Below, piece by piece: positions 1 through 34,930 of a stretch of 64,000 bases of DNA. Each line of letters begins with the position of its first letter. Within the stretch, counting starts at the first letter, position 1. Below the pieces are notes generated by a model. It was given only the letters and a program-made list of their open reading frames with translations, was not told the origin of the DNA and did no database searches. Origin of the DNA: Guillardia theta CCMP2712 (Eukaryota > Protista > Cryptophyta); contig NW_005434664.1 in NCBI RefSeq assembly GCF_000315625.1, positions 891,462 to 955,461 on the forward strand, written 5' to 3'. The translations under genes and the position numbers were made by a program.

Positions 1-3000
1 TACTTTCTATGACTCTACCCGTGTCAGGAATGGAAAAATACAAACGATCGGCCGCAGACGGCAAGATCCTCAAGTAGACAAGAGGAGCTACGGTTGTGGT
101 CTGACCTGAATCGCAGGGCAGTCCCAACCAACAACAAGTCGAGCAGAGGCAGTAAAAGTCTAGCGATGCGACGAGATGACGCTTGTTTCAGATGAAGACA
201 GCTCGATCTGATGGGTCTTCCTTGTTGCATTACGAGCAGAGGAAGATAAAGCTGAGCAACAACATCGTTGAGAAGGTAAATTGGGGAGAGCAAAGAAGTC
301 TCTTTACGCGTACGCCTCGATCAGTTTCAGATGGAGATCGAGGAGTTGGAGAGGAAGATGAATGCTCTCATGGACGAGTCTGACGCCTGTTCCATGCCAA
401 TCATCGTGTTGACGACTTGATAGGAGGAACGTGTTGGAAGAGAAATGCATTTCCCTGCAGGGTGTGCTCAAGGTCAAGGACGACGAAGTGATTGTATGCC
501 TTGCAGGAACTGAGTTGCTGTCTGCTTGTGATGTCGATCACTAGGAATTAACAAGACTCAACAAGAAGATCTTGTTCATGCTCGGTAGACGTGAAGGGAG
601 AGGGGCAAGCTGTTGTCTTGATCGCGTTGTAAAAGGGATGAGAGAAGGAGAAATTGCGGACCTGTACACTCGCATCGAGAAGAATGAAGTGATGCTGTTC
701 CGACAGAGATTGTGATCTTCATCATAACGTCATCGCAGGACGATCTTCTCTTCTTCGAGCCTGCTCCAGGGTCAGCAGCTCGTTCAAGTTCACCATATTT
801 CAACGACATCGATTACAGGTACGAGGCCCTCAACTGCGTCGATGGCATGACAGGAACATGTTAGTGCAAAGAAGATGAACAAGGACTTGGTCGATCTCGA
901 AAGAGATCTCCAAGTCAAGATCAGATACAGTGACAGGATGCAAACGCTCGTCTCAAACGCTGCTGACCTGGCGAGGCAGCGGGTAGAGTTTGAGGCGGCG
1001 AATCGTCCGGTGAGCTGCTAGGGGCAAAGGACTTCACTGACACGCGATCCATCCAGACCTTTGCAGAGGCGCAGAGTCAGACAGTCTGCGACGCCAAGGA
1101 CGTTGAGGTGTTTGACGTCTGATCGAGTCTCGTTGGACTGAACGTGTGTGATGAAGATGCTGTTTGCCGTGGAGGAAGTGACGAGTCAATCCGAAGATCC
1201 GGAAGATGTCAGCACTTGTTTGTTTCTAGTCCTGCCAGCTGATTGAAAGCTTCTCAGATGATGAACTTGATTCGAAAAGAACATCAGTCTAGACGCTTTC
1301 ACGCTGGCGTTCCGCGAGCCTTCAGGGTATGATGGAAGAGCTCGTTCCGGTGATTGAGATTGCATGTCAGAATGTGGTCATGGATTCAAGATCGTGGTTT
1401 GCTCAAAGGGTGAGTAGCTGCTGTCTTTTCTGATGTGAAAGTTCCAGTTCTAGGAAGATGTAATCTTATCCACACAGGATGCTCGGGAGGCAACGATAAA
1501 GATGAAGAAGGAACAACTCGACGCACAGATCATGGTCTACTACTTCACCAAGGTCCCTGACGGCTCTGCAACATGTCGTGACATTCACAAAAACTCAACC
1601 AGAGAGATTGCGACGTCAACGACGAGCTCTTGGGCAAAGACAAGTCGTCTTTAACGGGTTGTGCTGCGCCGGCAACTTGGCAGTGGGGCTGAGTGACTAT
1701 GATCGTTGCAGACTTTCTGCTTGAATATCACTTGTACAGGAGCGACAGCAAGGCAGATTGTGATTTAGAGCTGATGGATCTGATCAATCTGCTGAGACAT
1801 GTTGGACCTGTCACCCTCCCACGACGTGCTTACTCTGATGCAGTTCACCCGCCCGGACGAGCACGCCCGAGTCTCTCATGCTCGCATCTTCGCGCGGTTG
1901 AGTGGGATGAGGTAGGAGGAGGAGGAGGAGGAGGAGGAGGAGGAGGAGGAGGAGGAGGTGATAGTCCGCAGCTTGTCGGGGAAGGAGGGGACTGCTCTGC
2001 CGCAAGAGACTCTTGAGTTCGTTCTGGATGTTGTGTACTTCCTGCACGAGTTCTATGGGGAGCAGGTGGCGGGTCTGATGTGGAGGTGTGAGCGGTGATG
2101 GTGGCGAGTAGATGAGACGGGCTGCCATGTCTGCAAGGCAGAGGGCAGAGACGAAGGCGCTGAAGGATGTAGAGATCTTTGCCAACAGGACGAGGAAGGT
2201 CTCTCCCGCTAGCAATCTCTTCGTGGCAGCGTACAAGGAGAAGGAGAAGATCATGTTCAAGAAATCCTTGGTGAAGTCATCGAGCCCGGTGCTTCTCCTC
2301 GCCCTCAAGGCCGGCAGGTGTGCCGGGTGGTCAAGGAGGCCCTGCTGCTGAGGGCGAACATCGTCTGGAGCCAAGGGGACAACCTCTCGTTCCATGAGGC
2401 GAACAGGTCCCGGCTAGAAAGTCTCGACGTTACTCACGGTCGAGCTGCAGGCTGATGAACTTGGAGCAGGCGCTTGATTTCTCCATCTCTCATTACGAAG
2501 CTGTGCAAACCTTTGCCAGACCGCAAGGCTAGACTCACTTGTTGTGCAGGTGAGGACGATGAGAAGAAGGGCTCTGATGGATAAGTACAAGAACTACATG
2601 TACATCTGCTCTTCACTTGCACAAGAACCATGATGAGCTCGTGGTTCAGCGATGGAGAGGGGGTGATAACATGCAAACAATTCCATTCAATCATGCAGGA
2701 GATCGACAACGAGGTCCCCGAGGCTCAAGTACCGACAGCTGCTTGCGTTGCAGCTCCTTGCTCAACTTCCTGCCGCAGATTGATCGAATGTTCCGCAAGA
2801 TAGCAGTGGAGTCAGGGCCGACCAACTTGATAGATGCTGAGGTGTCGCCCCTTTCTTGACCTCAACCGCCAGTCATTCTTCTCCTGTCATGGTAGGTCTT
2901 CTGTGATGTGCTGCAAGAGAACAAGTTCGACCGACCGGCAGAGATCGGAGTCAAGGTTCTCCTGCTGCTGCTCCTCGTTCTCTTCTTCCTCTCCTCTCCT

Positions 3001-31116: not shown

Positions 31117-32566
31117 GTCTGAGGTAACGAGCACCTATCAGGTTGCGATGCGATGATACATCATCATCATGCTCGCTATAAGTTAGCAGCTCATGTCACG
31201 TTGGATGGCATCGATGATAAAATCATAGAAGGAACTCAGAAAGATGGCAGGGAGATGAGATTGGTTGAAATGTCACTGTAGAAACACTTGTAACTCATTC
31301 GATTCGTTACTCTGTCCATTAGACTGTTCCACAAAGGCTTCGATCCTCAGAAGTGTCTCTACATGCCTCCTCCTTCTCCATCACCTCCTTTGCCGACTCC
31401 TCCTGCCGCCTCCTCTCCTCTACTCCTACCCCCTTCTTCTCTCCTCCTCCCACCCCCTCCCCTCCTCCCTCTTCTCCATCCTCCTAAGGGCAGTGCATTG
31501 CGTTAGGCCCACCGTCTCTGGTCGCTGGGTCCCAGGTAGACAAGGTAATGACATATCCAATTTCAATTAGCGTCTCTACTAGTAAAATTAGAAGGTATAC
31601 CAGGCCAGAGGTCAGAAGGAGATCCGTTTCAACGGCAGTCCCTGGGCATTTGTAGAGTAGGCGTGTTGATGAAGGAGTACCGTACCGAGATCAAGTTGGA
31701 AGTTCTACGAGGGAAGAGAAGGAGCGGAGGAGGCGCAGGGAAAAGCTGAGGGCCAAGGAAGGAGGAAGACGCAGATGGACAAGGAAACAGACAGGGGCAG
31801 GGGCAGGTGCAGGGGCAGGTGCAGGTGCAGGTGCAGGTGCAGGTGCAGGGGTAGAGGCAGGTGCAGATGCAGGGGCAGGGGCAGGGGCATGGCAGGAGCA
31901 GGCAGAGAGTAAGCAAGTCAGGCAAGGTGGAGTGAGAGGTATGTTCCAACTTAGAATCCCCAGATCGCTTCAGTTAATGGGACAAGAGGGGAGGAAGTTG
32001 GACTTGCTCTATTAATATTGCTCTTAACAAGATTGATCTGAATCAAACATTTACAGCTGAAGCGATAAGACATAACTATCTACCATGTTACAGTAAATGC
32101 TAGGAATGCCGCCTTCGAATTCTTTGTTGAAACTTCATTTTTAACATGGGAGCAAGAGAAATTCCTATAGTTCCTTGCTAGAAGTTTATTGCGCCGTACA
32201 GGCCCCGCGGTGTCAAATGCAGCACAGACGCTTCAAATCGAAAACACACCTGGGGATTCCGTGTGATCGAAACAGCCGCTGATATTTCACGATGGTGACT
32301 ATTCATCACAAATATCAGAGGAAGAGGGAGACGAACCAGACAAATCCAGCAGCATACCGTCGAGAGCTATCACCTCATTTCCTCCATTGGTAAGTGCTGA
32401 GATAGGGCACTTGGAAAAAGAAAAACATGTGATGAGTGTGTTGATTTCAGAGTGATGTCTTCTAAAACATATGTGACCTACAGCTCTTTATATCCATACA
32501 CAACCCACCTGATGGATATCGAGGACGTATCTTGCCGACCGTTCGCACACACATGCTCAACTCTTC

Positions 32567-32617
32567 CTACTCCTGGAGGACTTGAACCTCCCCGTGGGCC
32601 TCAGACCCTTCAGAGCA
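32567..32617 (-). ncRNA. tRNA-like element (no anticodon arm) downstream of U3 copy A
   Basis: Reverse complement identical to 33959-34009: T arm GGAGG-TTCAAGT-CCTCC, hairpin GGGTC-TGA-GGCCC, acceptor-like stem TGCTCT/GGAGTA. Confidence 0.6.
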
Positions 32618-32623
32618 AAAGAT

Positions 32624-33042
32624 TCACACCTCATCAGAACCGGGTAGCCTCCCTCCTGCAAATGCACGTTGGCAAATGTAGGAACGTTCATCTATGAAGG
32701 TCGAGTGCGAACACTCGAGTCTCCTGCATCCCGCTCAGGAGGAACCCGCGCAATTCGTCTTCTGAGGTGTGAGAGTCGTCTTGATTGGTTCATCAAAACG
32801 AGAGAATGTACTTTAGAAATGATCCTGTAAAGTACTGCACACAGACAGTCAGCATCCCGCACAATCGCACAACGTACACGAAGACGCGAGGGGAGAAAAA
32901 GGATACTGGGATGAGGCGAGAGAGAGAAGAGGAAGCAGCAAGAGAGGGAAGGACAGGGAAGGACAAGGAAGGACAGGAAGCAGAGGGACAGAGTATGAGG
33001 ATCGGCATGATATCTGTGCATAGCGTCTGCTCACCAGTCGTT
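32624..33042 (-). ncRNA. U3: U3 snoRNA copy A, split by a 200-nt spliceosomal intron (exons 33035-33042 and 32624-32834)
   Basis: Spliced 5' end AACGACTG|TACTTTACAGGATCATTTCTAAAG gives GAC box, box A' and box A; boxes C', B, C, D and a 10-bp terminal stem follow; exons identical to copy B. Confidence 0.9.
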
Positions 33043-33066
33043 GATTCTCGCTGTCCTGGGTCAGGC

Positions 33067-33073
33067 TTTTATA
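33067..33073 (-). promoter_or_regulatory. TATA box of U3 copy A
   Basis: TATAAAA about 30 nt upstream of the predicted U3 5' end. Confidence 0.75.
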
Positions 33074-33496
33074 CCCTTCTCCCCGCCATCCCCTACCCCA
33101 CCCCCATGTCATAGCCTTCTACGTTTTACTACCCTTCTTTGGACTACCTCACACCCCCCTGAAGACTACCCCTACCTACCCTAATGATCACTTCTCCACT
33201 AGGGGGCTTCATCGCACGTGAAGTTTGGTCACACGTGCAATACCCCACCCCACCCACCAAATAGTATACAATACCCCTCCATTCTGAACTCATGACCCTC
33301 CCCCTGTTCCTGTTGAGGGGGTTGATCACGTGCGGGGATACTCGTGGGGGTACTAATCCCATCTATGAAATACATGGGAAGACAGGGGTACTACTGTAGG
33401 GAAATGTGGCGTGGGTGGCAAATTGAAAGATGGGTAGGGGTATTGAAGAAGCAGGTTTAGTCATAGGGGTGGGGTAGGGGATGGCGGGGAGAAGGG

Positions 33497-33503
33497 TATA
33501 AAA
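33497..33503 (+). promoter_or_regulatory. TATA box of U3 copy B
   Basis: TATAAAA about 30 nt upstream of the predicted U3 5' end at 33528. Confidence 0.75.
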
Positions 33504-33527
33504 GCCTGACCCAGGACAGCGAGAATC

Positions 33528-33952
33528 AACGACTGGTGAGCAGACGCTATGCAGTGATATCATGCCGATCCTCATACTCTGTCCCCTCCCTGTCCTTCCC
33601 TGTCCTTCCCTGTCCTTCCCTGTCCTTCCCTCTCTTGCTGCTTCCTCTTCTCTCTCTCGCCTCATCCCAGTATCCTTTTTCTCCCCTCGCGTCTTCGTGT
33701 ACGTTGTGCGATTGTACGGGATGCTGACTGTCTGTGTGCAGTACTTTACAGGATCATTTCTAAAGTACATTCTCTCGTTTTGATGAACCAATCAAGACGA
33801 CTCTCACACCTCAGAAGACGAATTGCGCGGGTTCCTCCTGAGCGGGATGCAGGAGACTCGAGTGTTCGCACTCGACCTTCATAGATGAACGTTCCTACAT
33901 TTGCCAACGTGCATTTGCAGGAGGGAGGCTACCCGGTTCTGATGAGGTGTGA
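33528..33952 (+). ncRNA. U3: U3 snoRNA copy B, split by a 206-nt spliceosomal intron (exons 33528-33535 and 33742-33952)
   Basis: Donor GTGAGC 33536, branch CTGAC 33724-33728, acceptor TGCAG 33741; box A' TACTT, box A GGATCATTTCT, C' GAAGACGA 33814-33821, B GAGCGGGA 33840-33847, C AGATGA 33883-33888, D CTGA 33939-33942; stem TCACACCTCA 33804-33813 pairs with TGAGGTGTGA 33943-33952; mature length ~219 nt. Confidence 0.9.
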
Positions 33953-33958
33953 ATCTTT

Positions 33959-34009
33959 TGCTCTGAAGGGTCTGAGGCCCACGGGGAGGTTCAAGTCCTC
34001 CAGGAGTAG
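33959..34009 (+). ncRNA. tRNA-like element (no anticodon arm) downstream of U3 copy B
   Basis: T stem 33985-33989/33997-34001 with loop TTCAAGT; hairpin 33968-33980; acceptor-like stem 33959-33964/34003-34008. Confidence 0.6.
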
Positions 34010-34095
34010 GAAGAGTGGAATATGTTTGTGTCTTTATTCATGATTCGTGTGAGTATCTGGGTCAACATGATTCACGAAGAGCATAAGCACACTGA

Positions 34096-34930
34096 TCAAG
34101 TTTTACCTTTATTCATTTGGATTCTCCTGCACAGTCGTCGCCTGCGTTCGCCAACACGAGCTGTTCCGAAATGAAGTGTCGCTGCTTCAACACTAGATCT
34201 AGTTCTTGTGCCACTTTTTGTTTCTCTGTTTTGTATCTTGACAGCTTCTCTGTAAATGTATTCAAACATGAAAGTTGGAAAGTGCTGCAGACCTCTCAGG
34301 TCAGCAATTTCTTCATCTTTCCTACGCACAACCTGCATTATATGTCAGTGGACAAGGCTGTTTTGCAAGGAGTGAGAGAAGAGTCGCAGGTCACCTGGAC
34401 ATAATTGTCTTCGAGCTCTTTTCTTCTTTCTAAGTTCTTACAAGCATTGTCCACTCTTGCAAGACTCTCCCGTGTCTGTTTGGCCGTGGAAACCACGCTG
34501 TTCAGGTCTCGCCGCTTCGAGCTTTCAGTACTGGCTTGCATCGCATCCATGGCCGACCGACATCTCTGTAGCTCGAGCTCTAGAATCTTGGCATTCGTCT
34601 TGAGAGCGCTACATTCACTCTTCAGGCTCTCGTTCTCGCTTCTAAGGCCTTCCACTTCTTGTTGTAACTGTTGGACCTTTCTTTCATACACCTGATCAGC
34701 AAACAGGCCCGTCATTCCCTGTCAGTCTGAGCCCCGTCCTGTCAAATAGAGGATTCATTCGCATACCGATGTGGTAACCTCCTTCTGAATTCGAAGAACG
34801 TCGCTCATTTGTTGGCAAGCCAGTGCCTGAAAATTTATTTCATTTCCCTGGCTCCAACAGGCAAGCTGCCTGTAGGAATTACCGAGATGCTCGTCCAGGT
34901 GGCATCAAATTGTTCCACCCCTCTGCTCAT
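34096..34930 (-). CDS. Coiled-coil protein of unknown function, multi-exon
   Basis: MSRGVEQFDATWTSIS / ALACQQMSDVLRIQKE / VYERKVQQLQQEVEGLRSENESLK.. / VVRRKDEEIADLR.. separated by short GT-AG introns. Confidence 0.6.

Follow-up and report, generated by a model that had tools for sequence, protein, structure and literature searches.

What makes the 3' end of the U3 small nucleolar RNA (snoRNA) in the cryptophyte alga Guillardia theta? The question is raised by a stretch of 64,000 nucleotides (nt) of the genome of strain CCMP2712 (C10:891462-955461 of an 87.1-Mb, 669-contig genome), here called the window, to which the positions below refer unless another locus is named. Two full-length U3 genes lie in it head-to-head, at 33735-33947 (+) and 32629-32841 (-), and behind each stands the same 51-nt module, which resembles a transfer RNA (tRNA) without an anticodon arm. 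On balance, we favor the reading that this module is an anticodon-less mini-tRNA in the 3' trailer of the U3 precursor, where it would act as an RNase P-type signal for 3'-end processing and termination that requires neither poly(A) nor a 3' box. The case for the structure, the family, and the positional logic of the module is strong, and RNase P would probably be the enzyme that cuts at its 5' side.

The identity of the two genes is clear. Both match the Rfam U3 model (RF00012) at 94.7 bits over model positions 1-219 (E = 1e-19 for the plus copy), and a search of the whole genome with that model found a third such gene (93.6 bits) at C10:881428-881640, which is 10 kb from the window. All three copies lie well above the gathering score of the family, which is 34 bits. 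The window genes are parts of two inverted arms (32546-32977 and 33599-34030) that are complementary at 99%. In the plus copy the U3 body, which is exon 2 of the gene, spans 33742-33947.

The module of the plus-strand gene occupies 33959-34009 (+) and that of the minus-strand gene 32567-32617 (-). Both score 86.7 bits with R1, a covariance model of the three U3 modules, and the plus-strand module, which runs from position 1 to 73 in tRNA numbering, also fits the strict descriptor defined below. Between the end of the Rfam match at 33947 and the module lies a U-rich spacer, UGUGAAUCUUU (33948-33958, +); a sequence-only reading of this locus had put the distance from the terminal stem of U3 at 6 nt, and the Rfam end extends it to 11 nt. 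The 5' strand of the acceptor, UGCUCUG (33959-33965), pairs at six of seven positions with 34002-34008 and is followed by AA. Next come a mini hairpin that resembles a D arm, GGGUC-UGA-GGCCC with GG at the edge of its loop (33968-33980, read from the sequence and the RNAfold structure), the nucleotides ACGG, and a T arm, GGAGG-UUCAAGU-CCUCC (33985-34001), with a G53-C61 pair and a loop that begins U54 U55 C56 R57 A58. The 3' strand of the acceptor, AGGAGUA, and G34009 at the discriminator position complete the module (34002-34009). The sequence-only reading had drawn the acceptor as six base pairs (bp) with a bulge; when the module is parsed in tRNA numbering, the acceptor becomes a stem of seven positions that abuts the T stem directly, with a G7-A66 mismatch at the junction. 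The distance from acceptor to T stem is only 19 nt, with no anticodon arm and no 7-nt anticodon loop. The minimum-energy fold calculated by RNAfold is this three-way junction; the acceptor-like stem, the GC hairpin, the perfect T arm, and the lack of an anticodon arm that had first been noticed are all present in both sequence and fold.

The inverted copy (32560-32623) is identical, as had been noted, and identity between the arms does end just past the structure, the first mismatch being at 34017, 8 nt beyond the module. The claim that the module follows each U3 gene holds for the genome as a whole, the third U3 included: in BLAST-type and model searches of the genome, its sequence occurred behind three of three U3 genes and nowhere else. 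The three copies are 100% identical from the branch point of the U3 intron to 33999, after which the third copy diverges fully (CCAGGAGUAGG versus UCCGAGAGCUU). Even so, its T stem is closed (GGGAGG/CCUUCC), and its acceptor strands form 5 Watson-Crick pairs (GCUCU/AGAGC). Random genomic tails restored both stems in 0.3-1.5% of trials. The changes in the third copy are mostly transitions that swap G-U and Watson-Crick pairs, and the retention of both stems gives a modest hint of selection.

The same family of modules is found behind histone genes. A search of the whole genome with R1 gave a weak match in the 3' untranslated region (UTR) of a histone H2A gene, where a module reading CUACCUU-UACGC-AUG-GCGUA-CAA-CGAGG-UUCAAGU-CCUCG-CGGGUAG lies ~45 nt past the stop codon. 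(The remaining weak R1 matches, at loci L043 to L046, L048, and L049, lie in coding sequence and were rejected as chance.) The 3' UTRs of all histone-fold genes were then read. A search for stem-loop and T loop together gave 12 matches, versus one for a reversed control, and 11 histone genes from all five classes carry the complete cassette (two H3, five H2B, two H2A, one H4, and one H1). The cassette consists of a stem-loop, GGUGUU-N4-AACACC, and a module that starts 1-9 nt later, mostly 4-6 nt. The histone modules are 42-50 nt long and have a 7-position acceptor abutting a 5-bp T stem, a UUCRANN loop, the G53-C61 pair, and no anticodon arm. Their linkers, of 10-18 nt, hold a tiny GG-containing hairpin in the D-like place, for example GC-UGGU-GC, UGCA-GUUGG-UGCA, GCGC-UAGG-GCGC, or UACGC-AUG-GCGUA. 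Histone variants that lack the stem-loop (a long H3-like gene, H3 fragments and variants, and H2A variants; loci L052, L053, L054, L060, and L063) also lack a module within 260 nt of the stop codon, and the cassette therefore marks replication-type histone genes only.

The pairing statistics of the family are those of a selected RNA structure. The T stems are 100% paired, with compensatory changes at four of the five pairs, a result reached by 0 of 500 shuffles; pairing drops to 33-56% when the partner columns are slid, and G53-C61 is invariant. MAFFT misaligns the covarying 5' acceptor strands, and the acceptor was tested by structural parse and permutations. Acceptor strands pair with their own partners at 53 of 63 positions, compared to a mean of 3.6 of 7 with the partners of other modules (permutation P < 1e-5). 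Neither R1 nor R2, a second model made from H2B and H3 modules, could align or enumerate the whole family, both being too sequence bound. A strict descriptor (closed T arm, at least six of seven acceptor positions paired, and a linker of 9-20 nt) found only these modules in 241 kb of sequence fetched from this genome (nine distinct ones, U3 included), whereas shuffled sequence gave 0.25.

With an acceptor paired at 6/7 positions, a T stem at 5/5, the loop TTCAAGT, and a 19-nt linker with a GG hairpin, the U3 module falls within the definition of the histone module. No histone-type stem-loop precedes it; the box C'/D terminal stem of U3 stands there instead. The terminal stem and the 11-nt U-rich spacer of U3 thus replace the histone stem-loop, and therefore the U3 module, as judged from its sequence, is a variant of the histone cassette, not a copy of it. 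Its membership in the histone-module family is a new finding. Taken with the pairing data, this supports the module as a genuine, selected tRNA-like RNA element that is part of a system. Its status beyond chance follows from the closed-stem T loop and from its recurrence directly behind each of the three U3 genes and behind 11 histone stem-loops, not from its fold energy.

Could the module still be a functionless remnant of a tRNA gene or of a tRNA-derived repeat, duplicated with U3 and kept identical by gene conversion? We consider this very improbable. It would account for the 100% identity from branch point to T loop, which resembles a conversion tract, and for the unremarkable fold energy, and no U3 orthologue that we retrieved demonstrates selection. 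However, no tRNA gene or other genomic locus has the module sequence, the third copy retains both stems where its sequence diverges, and U3 has no other recognizable 3'-end signal. In addition, an independent set of 11 histone genes has the same anticodon-less design in the equivalent position with different sequences, which hitchhiking cannot produce. Two related candidates were rejected: a canonical tRNA gene, on the basis of the missing anticodon arm and the lack of a tRNA call by ARAGORN or Rfam, and descent from an existing tRNA gene, on the basis of a genome-wide search that found the module sequence behind the three U3 genes only.

In promoter and 3' signals, too, U3 differs from the other small nuclear RNA genes. 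All 11 genes for the U1, U2, U4, and U5 small nuclear RNAs (snRNAs) have an upstream element, CCGCCATC, at -65 to -67 and AAACAAA at +8 to +12. U6, which is present as a single gene, shares this upstream element, here at -62, and has in addition a TATA-like box at ~-30 and a T7 terminator. The shared upstream element plus 3' box, or for U6 the TATA-like box plus T7, defines the snRNA promoter and 3'-box code of this alga. In full, the U1/U2/U4/U5 upstream element reads GCCCGCCATCG(R)GGG and the metazoan-like 3' box reads AAACAAAnnnAAGA (loci L007 to L019, U6 among them). The forward upstream element and the 3' box, which are the Integrator-type signals of snRNA genes transcribed by RNA polymerase II (Pol II), are both absent from three of three U3 genes. 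The sequence-only reading had proposed a genome-wide search for the module behind other snRNA and snoRNA genes; as a sequence it turned up only behind the three U3 genes, and U1, U2, U4, and U5 carry the upstream element and 3' box instead.

What the U3 genes have is a different layout. In the plus copy the 5' part spans 33497-33741 (+): TATAAAA at 33497-33503, a putative 8-nt exon 1, AACGACUG, at 33528-33535, and an intron at 33536-33741 with the signals GTGAG ... TGCTGAC ... CAG. The corresponding parts are at 32835-33079 in the inverted copy and at ~1714-1870 (- strand) of locus L003 for the third copy. Upstream conservation with the third copy is restricted to TATAAAA at 33497-33503, AACGACUG plus GUGAG at 33528-33540, and UGCUGAC...CAG before 33742. 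The intron measures 206 nt in the window copies; that of the third copy is shorter, and its sequence is unrelated. The distance from TATA to the start of the Rfam match is 238 nt in the window copies and 147 nt in the third. Joining AACGACUG to UACUUUACAGGAUC gives back the canonical 5' end of U3. No spliced U3 junction was found in the RNA reads and contigs examined, in which an 8-nt first exon is hardly detectable. Because the TATA box, the exon 1/5' splice site, and the branch point/3' splice site are conserved, and the forward snRNA upstream element and 3' box are lacking, U3 looks like an mRNA-type Pol II gene that requires a 3'-end signal of its own. The intron also contains a (CCCTGTCCTT)n microsatellite (33575-33630 and 32945-32985), whose repeat number is unequal between the inverted copies and which is the main interruption of the otherwise 99% identical arms.

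This layout bears on an alternative that operates on DNA, quite unlikely in our view. GGTTCAAGTCC fits the B-box consensus GGTTCRANNCC and could bind TFIIIC, either as a downstream element for RNA polymerase III (Pol III) like that of the yeast U6 gene, SNR6, with TTTT at 33956-33959 as terminator, or as an extra-TFIIIC boundary or roadblock that halts Pol II between convergent genes. The T4 run is indeed there after U3, the module does sit between tail-to-tail genes, and the 100% identity of the three copies ends just past the box. At SNR6, too, the small RNA gene ends in a T run and a match to the B-box consensus lies downstream of it. However, SNR6 has an A box, an upstream TATA box at -30, and Pol III termination and needs no acceptor complementarity, whereas the U3 unit has no A box within 2 mismatches and its TATA precedes the body by ~240 nt, with conserved splice signals between them. 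The alga's own Pol III U6 gene is also of another design. A T5 run lies in the intron of two copies (33676-33680 in the plus copy), and what follows the gene is only T4; the T5 run had been cited from the start as an argument against Pol III, and in these two copies the argument is borne out. Finally, a B box needs no complementary acceptor, yet the acceptor strands covary across at least 12 loci, and the same module is carried by histone mRNAs, which are Pol II products. The Pol III or B-box alternative raised by the sequence-only reading is disfavored on these grounds.

RNA data establish two things. First, there is an RNA of U3 length that stops at 33947: run X10 contains a 220-nt contig (33728-33947) that reaches exactly to the predicted 3' end of U3 and leaves the module uncovered. 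Second, the module is present in RNA from all three copies, the strand of that RNA not being distinguished. A contig of run X6 starts at 33736, crosses the module, and continues into 28 nt found only in the third copy, and intron-containing contigs occur in that run at similar depth; a contig of run X7 extends from inside U3 through the module into the convergent neighbor gene. In run X23 (raw RNA reads, n = 20), coverage is equally deep over the module and the U3 body; some loose ends can be assigned to the third copy and some to the inverted copy, and coverage continues into sequence unique to the plus copy. The RNA libraries look poly(A) biased, and the data from X6, X7, and X10 are contigs, which cannot show ends.

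The neighbor downstream of the plus-strand U3 is a convergent protein-coding gene (34021-34500, -) with introns at 34057-34106, 34250-34292, and 34331-34392, whose CT..AC joints were seen in X6, X7, and X10. The contig of its mRNA in X10 starts at 34021, which places the end of that mRNA ~12 nt from the module. The inverted U3 is likewise convergent with a protein-coding gene (32300-32545, +), predicted from the sequence alone. Intergenic space around the U3 genes is extremely short.

From these pieces we would reconstruct the making of U3 as follows. Pol II would start ~30 nt after the TATA box, and the 8-nt first exon would be spliced to the U3 body. The polymerase would transcribe through the module, and RNase P would cut between 33958 and 33959, the predicted site. 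The cut would leave a pre-U3 with an 11-nt tail, UGUGAAUCUUU-OH, ending in UCUUU-OH, a U-run tail like those to which La and Lsm proteins bind on yeast pre-U3, and exonucleases would trim it to ~33947. A second cut, by RNase Z behind G34009, would free a mini-tRNA of ~51 nt and expose a 5' phosphate as the entry for a 5'-3' torpedo exonuclease, which would stop the polymerase before the convergent gene with its mRNA end ~12 nt away. On histone transcripts the same cut would fall 1-9 nt past the stem-loop. Animal histone mRNAs end a few nucleotides after their stem-loop, which matches that place. We are evenly divided over the most general form of the proposal, in which a single 3'-end and termination pathway, independent of poly(A), U7, and Integrator, would use mini-tRNAs of 42-51 nt behind both U3 and the replication-type histone mRNAs of five classes, with cuts by RNase P (5') and RNase Z (3') and torpedo entry.

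Several observations weigh against this reading of the module. Its fold is no more stable than that of dinucleotide shuffles (z = -0.64 by RNAfold; 48 of 200 were as stable), and thermodynamic z-scores overall, from -1.07 to +0.54, give no support. ARAGORN found 0 tRNA genes in the window, and the Rfam tRNA model had no match at E <= 10 on 33940-34030. On the histone loci, the tRNA and Histone3 models of Rfam had no match at E <= 0.1. The best Rfam family for the module is mascRNA-menRNA (RF01684), with 16.2 bits (E = 0.3 on a 91-nt search), a match that rests on the T arm; against a gathering score of 42.5 bits, the window copies reach 16.2 and the third copy 12.5. The proposal of a mascRNA-type system stands in part: a tRNA-like family with covarying stems is there, and membership in the Rfam family is not.

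Other difficulties concern geometry and the U3 locus itself. The acceptor contains two G-U pairs besides the G-A mismatch at 7-66; a further 5 bp can form between leader and trailer in the two window copies, which should hinder RNase P; the acceptor register of the third copy is off by 1 nt from canonical geometry; and the putative cut lies 11 nt past the mature end, so that trimming must be assumed. The RNA data show no cleavage product, no pile-up of ends at 33958/33959 or 34009/34010, and no CCA-tailed small RNA, at low depth, and the convergent genes could supply antisense read-through over the module. Support specific to U3 comes from paralogues only, whose 100% identity could in part reflect a gene-conversion tract. 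No U3 orthologue with a module was retrieved by a metagenome scan with a U3 5' motif, which gave 19 loci and one U3 gene. A search for the nuclear RNase P RNA gave no RF00009 match, but a control showed this search to be uninformative.

The single U3 gene from the metagenome scan (locus L030, 568-861, -; OJCB01009074.1) belongs to an unidentified, unrelated eukaryote that has the 5' box sequence in common with this alga. It has no intron, a T5 run directly after box D, and no tRNA-like element downstream. A scan of genome contigs for U3 orthologues gave two chance bacterial matches, and protein-database searches with two spurious open reading frames across U3 and the module, aimed at transcripts of relatives, gave no matches.

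The geometric points lend themselves to another explanation: that the module is a selected RNA structure but not a substrate of RNase P. It might serve as a protective or assembly platform at the 3' end, to which La, an exportin, the CCA-adding enzyme, or a dedicated protein would bind; or a protein that recognizes the tRNA elbow might guide a different nuclease to it (an enzyme of the RNase III or CPSF73 type, or RNase Z alone). Covariation shows that structure is selected, not which enzyme reads it; the 7-66 mismatch, the G-U pairs, the shifted third copy, and the leader-trailer pairing are not ideal for RNase P; and the mature end of U3 at 33947 is 11 nt from acceptor position +1. We nevertheless regard this explanation as rather unlikely. 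The parts that the module retains, a stacked acceptor/T stem, a canonical T loop, and a GG hairpin for the D arm, are exactly those read by RNase P, RNase Z, and the CCA enzyme. Position +1 of the histone modules lies 1-9 nt (mostly 4-6 nt) past the stem-loop, where metazoan histone mRNAs end, and MALAT1/mascRNA and the t-elements of plant mitochondria provide precedents for RNase P. On balance, RNase P-type processing remains the reading that we favor.

The closest known parallel is mascRNA/menRNA. These tRNA-like elements stand at the 3' ends of the vertebrate RNAs MALAT1 and NEAT1, and an RNase P cut at their 5' side makes the upstream end. Like them, the U3 module is a tRNA-like fold directly behind the mature 3' end of a nonpolyadenylated Pol II transcript (the polymerase being the presumed one for U3), and the T loops are nearly the same (GGUUCAAAUCC in mascRNA and GGUUCAAGUCC in the U3 module). 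Unlike the U3 module, mascRNA is a four-arm cloverleaf with a reduced anticodon arm, and what lies upstream is a long noncoding RNA (lncRNA) with a triple-helix end; here it is a snoRNA and histone mRNAs in an alga, and cleavage is a prediction. Within this genome, the histone cassettes share with the U3 module the overall range of 42-51 nt, the TTCRANN loop, the GG hairpin, and a place behind RNAs that normally lack poly(A). They differ in belonging to mRNAs rather than to a box C/D snoRNA, in having a spacer of 1-9 nt rather than 11 U-rich nt, and in their D-like hairpins, that of U3 being longer (5 bp).

Organelles offer a similar logic. In the t-elements of plant mitochondria and the tRNA punctuation of animal mitochondria, flanking tRNA folds define the ends of their neighbors, and organellar tRNAs and tRNA-like folds are cut by RNase P and RNase Z. 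Those transcripts are polycistronic, whereas the U3 gene is nuclear and TATA driven and has an intron. Plant tRNA-snoRNA dicistrons (tRNA-Gly with snoR43) likewise join a unit shaped like a tRNA to a box C/D snoRNA in a single transcript, from which tRNA-processing enzymes release the two; however, there a full tRNA lies upstream, the promoter is an internal Pol III promoter, and RNase Z frees the 5' side of the snoRNA, whereas here a mini-tRNA lies downstream. The yeast U3 genes (SNR17A/B) have an intron near the 5' end and a 3' trailer that is cut by an endonuclease, with a U-rich intermediate and exonuclease trimming. The yeast trailer is a hairpin for Rnt1, an RNase III, and that of the alga is a tRNA-like fold. 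Our literature searches turned up no report of tRNA-like elements behind U3 or histone genes, and neither such elements nor cryptophytes are mentioned in a 2026 preprint on how histone 3'-end processing evolved.

Some further features of the small RNA genes were noted in passing. G-rich motifs, GGGGTGGGG(T)AGGGG, occur upstream of U3 (33455-33490, 33085-33120, and ~1880-2080 of L003), of U2 and U4 (L008 and L017), and of H2A (~2060-2090 of L047), and may be a shared promoter-proximal element. In both window U3 copies, an inverted snRNA upstream element, GATGGCGGGG, lies between the G-rich motif and TATA; an inverted GATGGCGG adjoins TATA in these two copies. The RNase MRP RNA match (118.9 bits; L020, C30:622632-622899, -) is flanked by sequences that resemble splice sites, with ctctcacAG directly before it and cacgg|GTAAGT directly after it, and its locus has no snRNA-type upstream element. 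This RNA may be processed from a spliced host transcript or may even be an exon.

The use of RNase P with a tRNA-like trailer to make 3' ends is known for a few vertebrate lncRNAs (MALAT1 and NEAT1) and for organellar transcripts. In this alga, two essential but unrelated kinds of nuclear RNA, the U3 snoRNA and the mRNAs of core and linker histones, appear to rely on that logic. Animals and yeast use dedicated machineries for those classes, namely, Integrator, Nrd1-Rnt1, and the U7 small nuclear ribonucleoprotein. The module also bears on the cutting of histone stem-loop mRNAs in those protists from which a U7 snRNA is not known. The U3 case shows that the module is not confined to histone genes, and it has the look of a portable end signal. 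It would be a compact design for a terminator, and from it follows the prediction of a new class of small RNAs with a tRNA shape.

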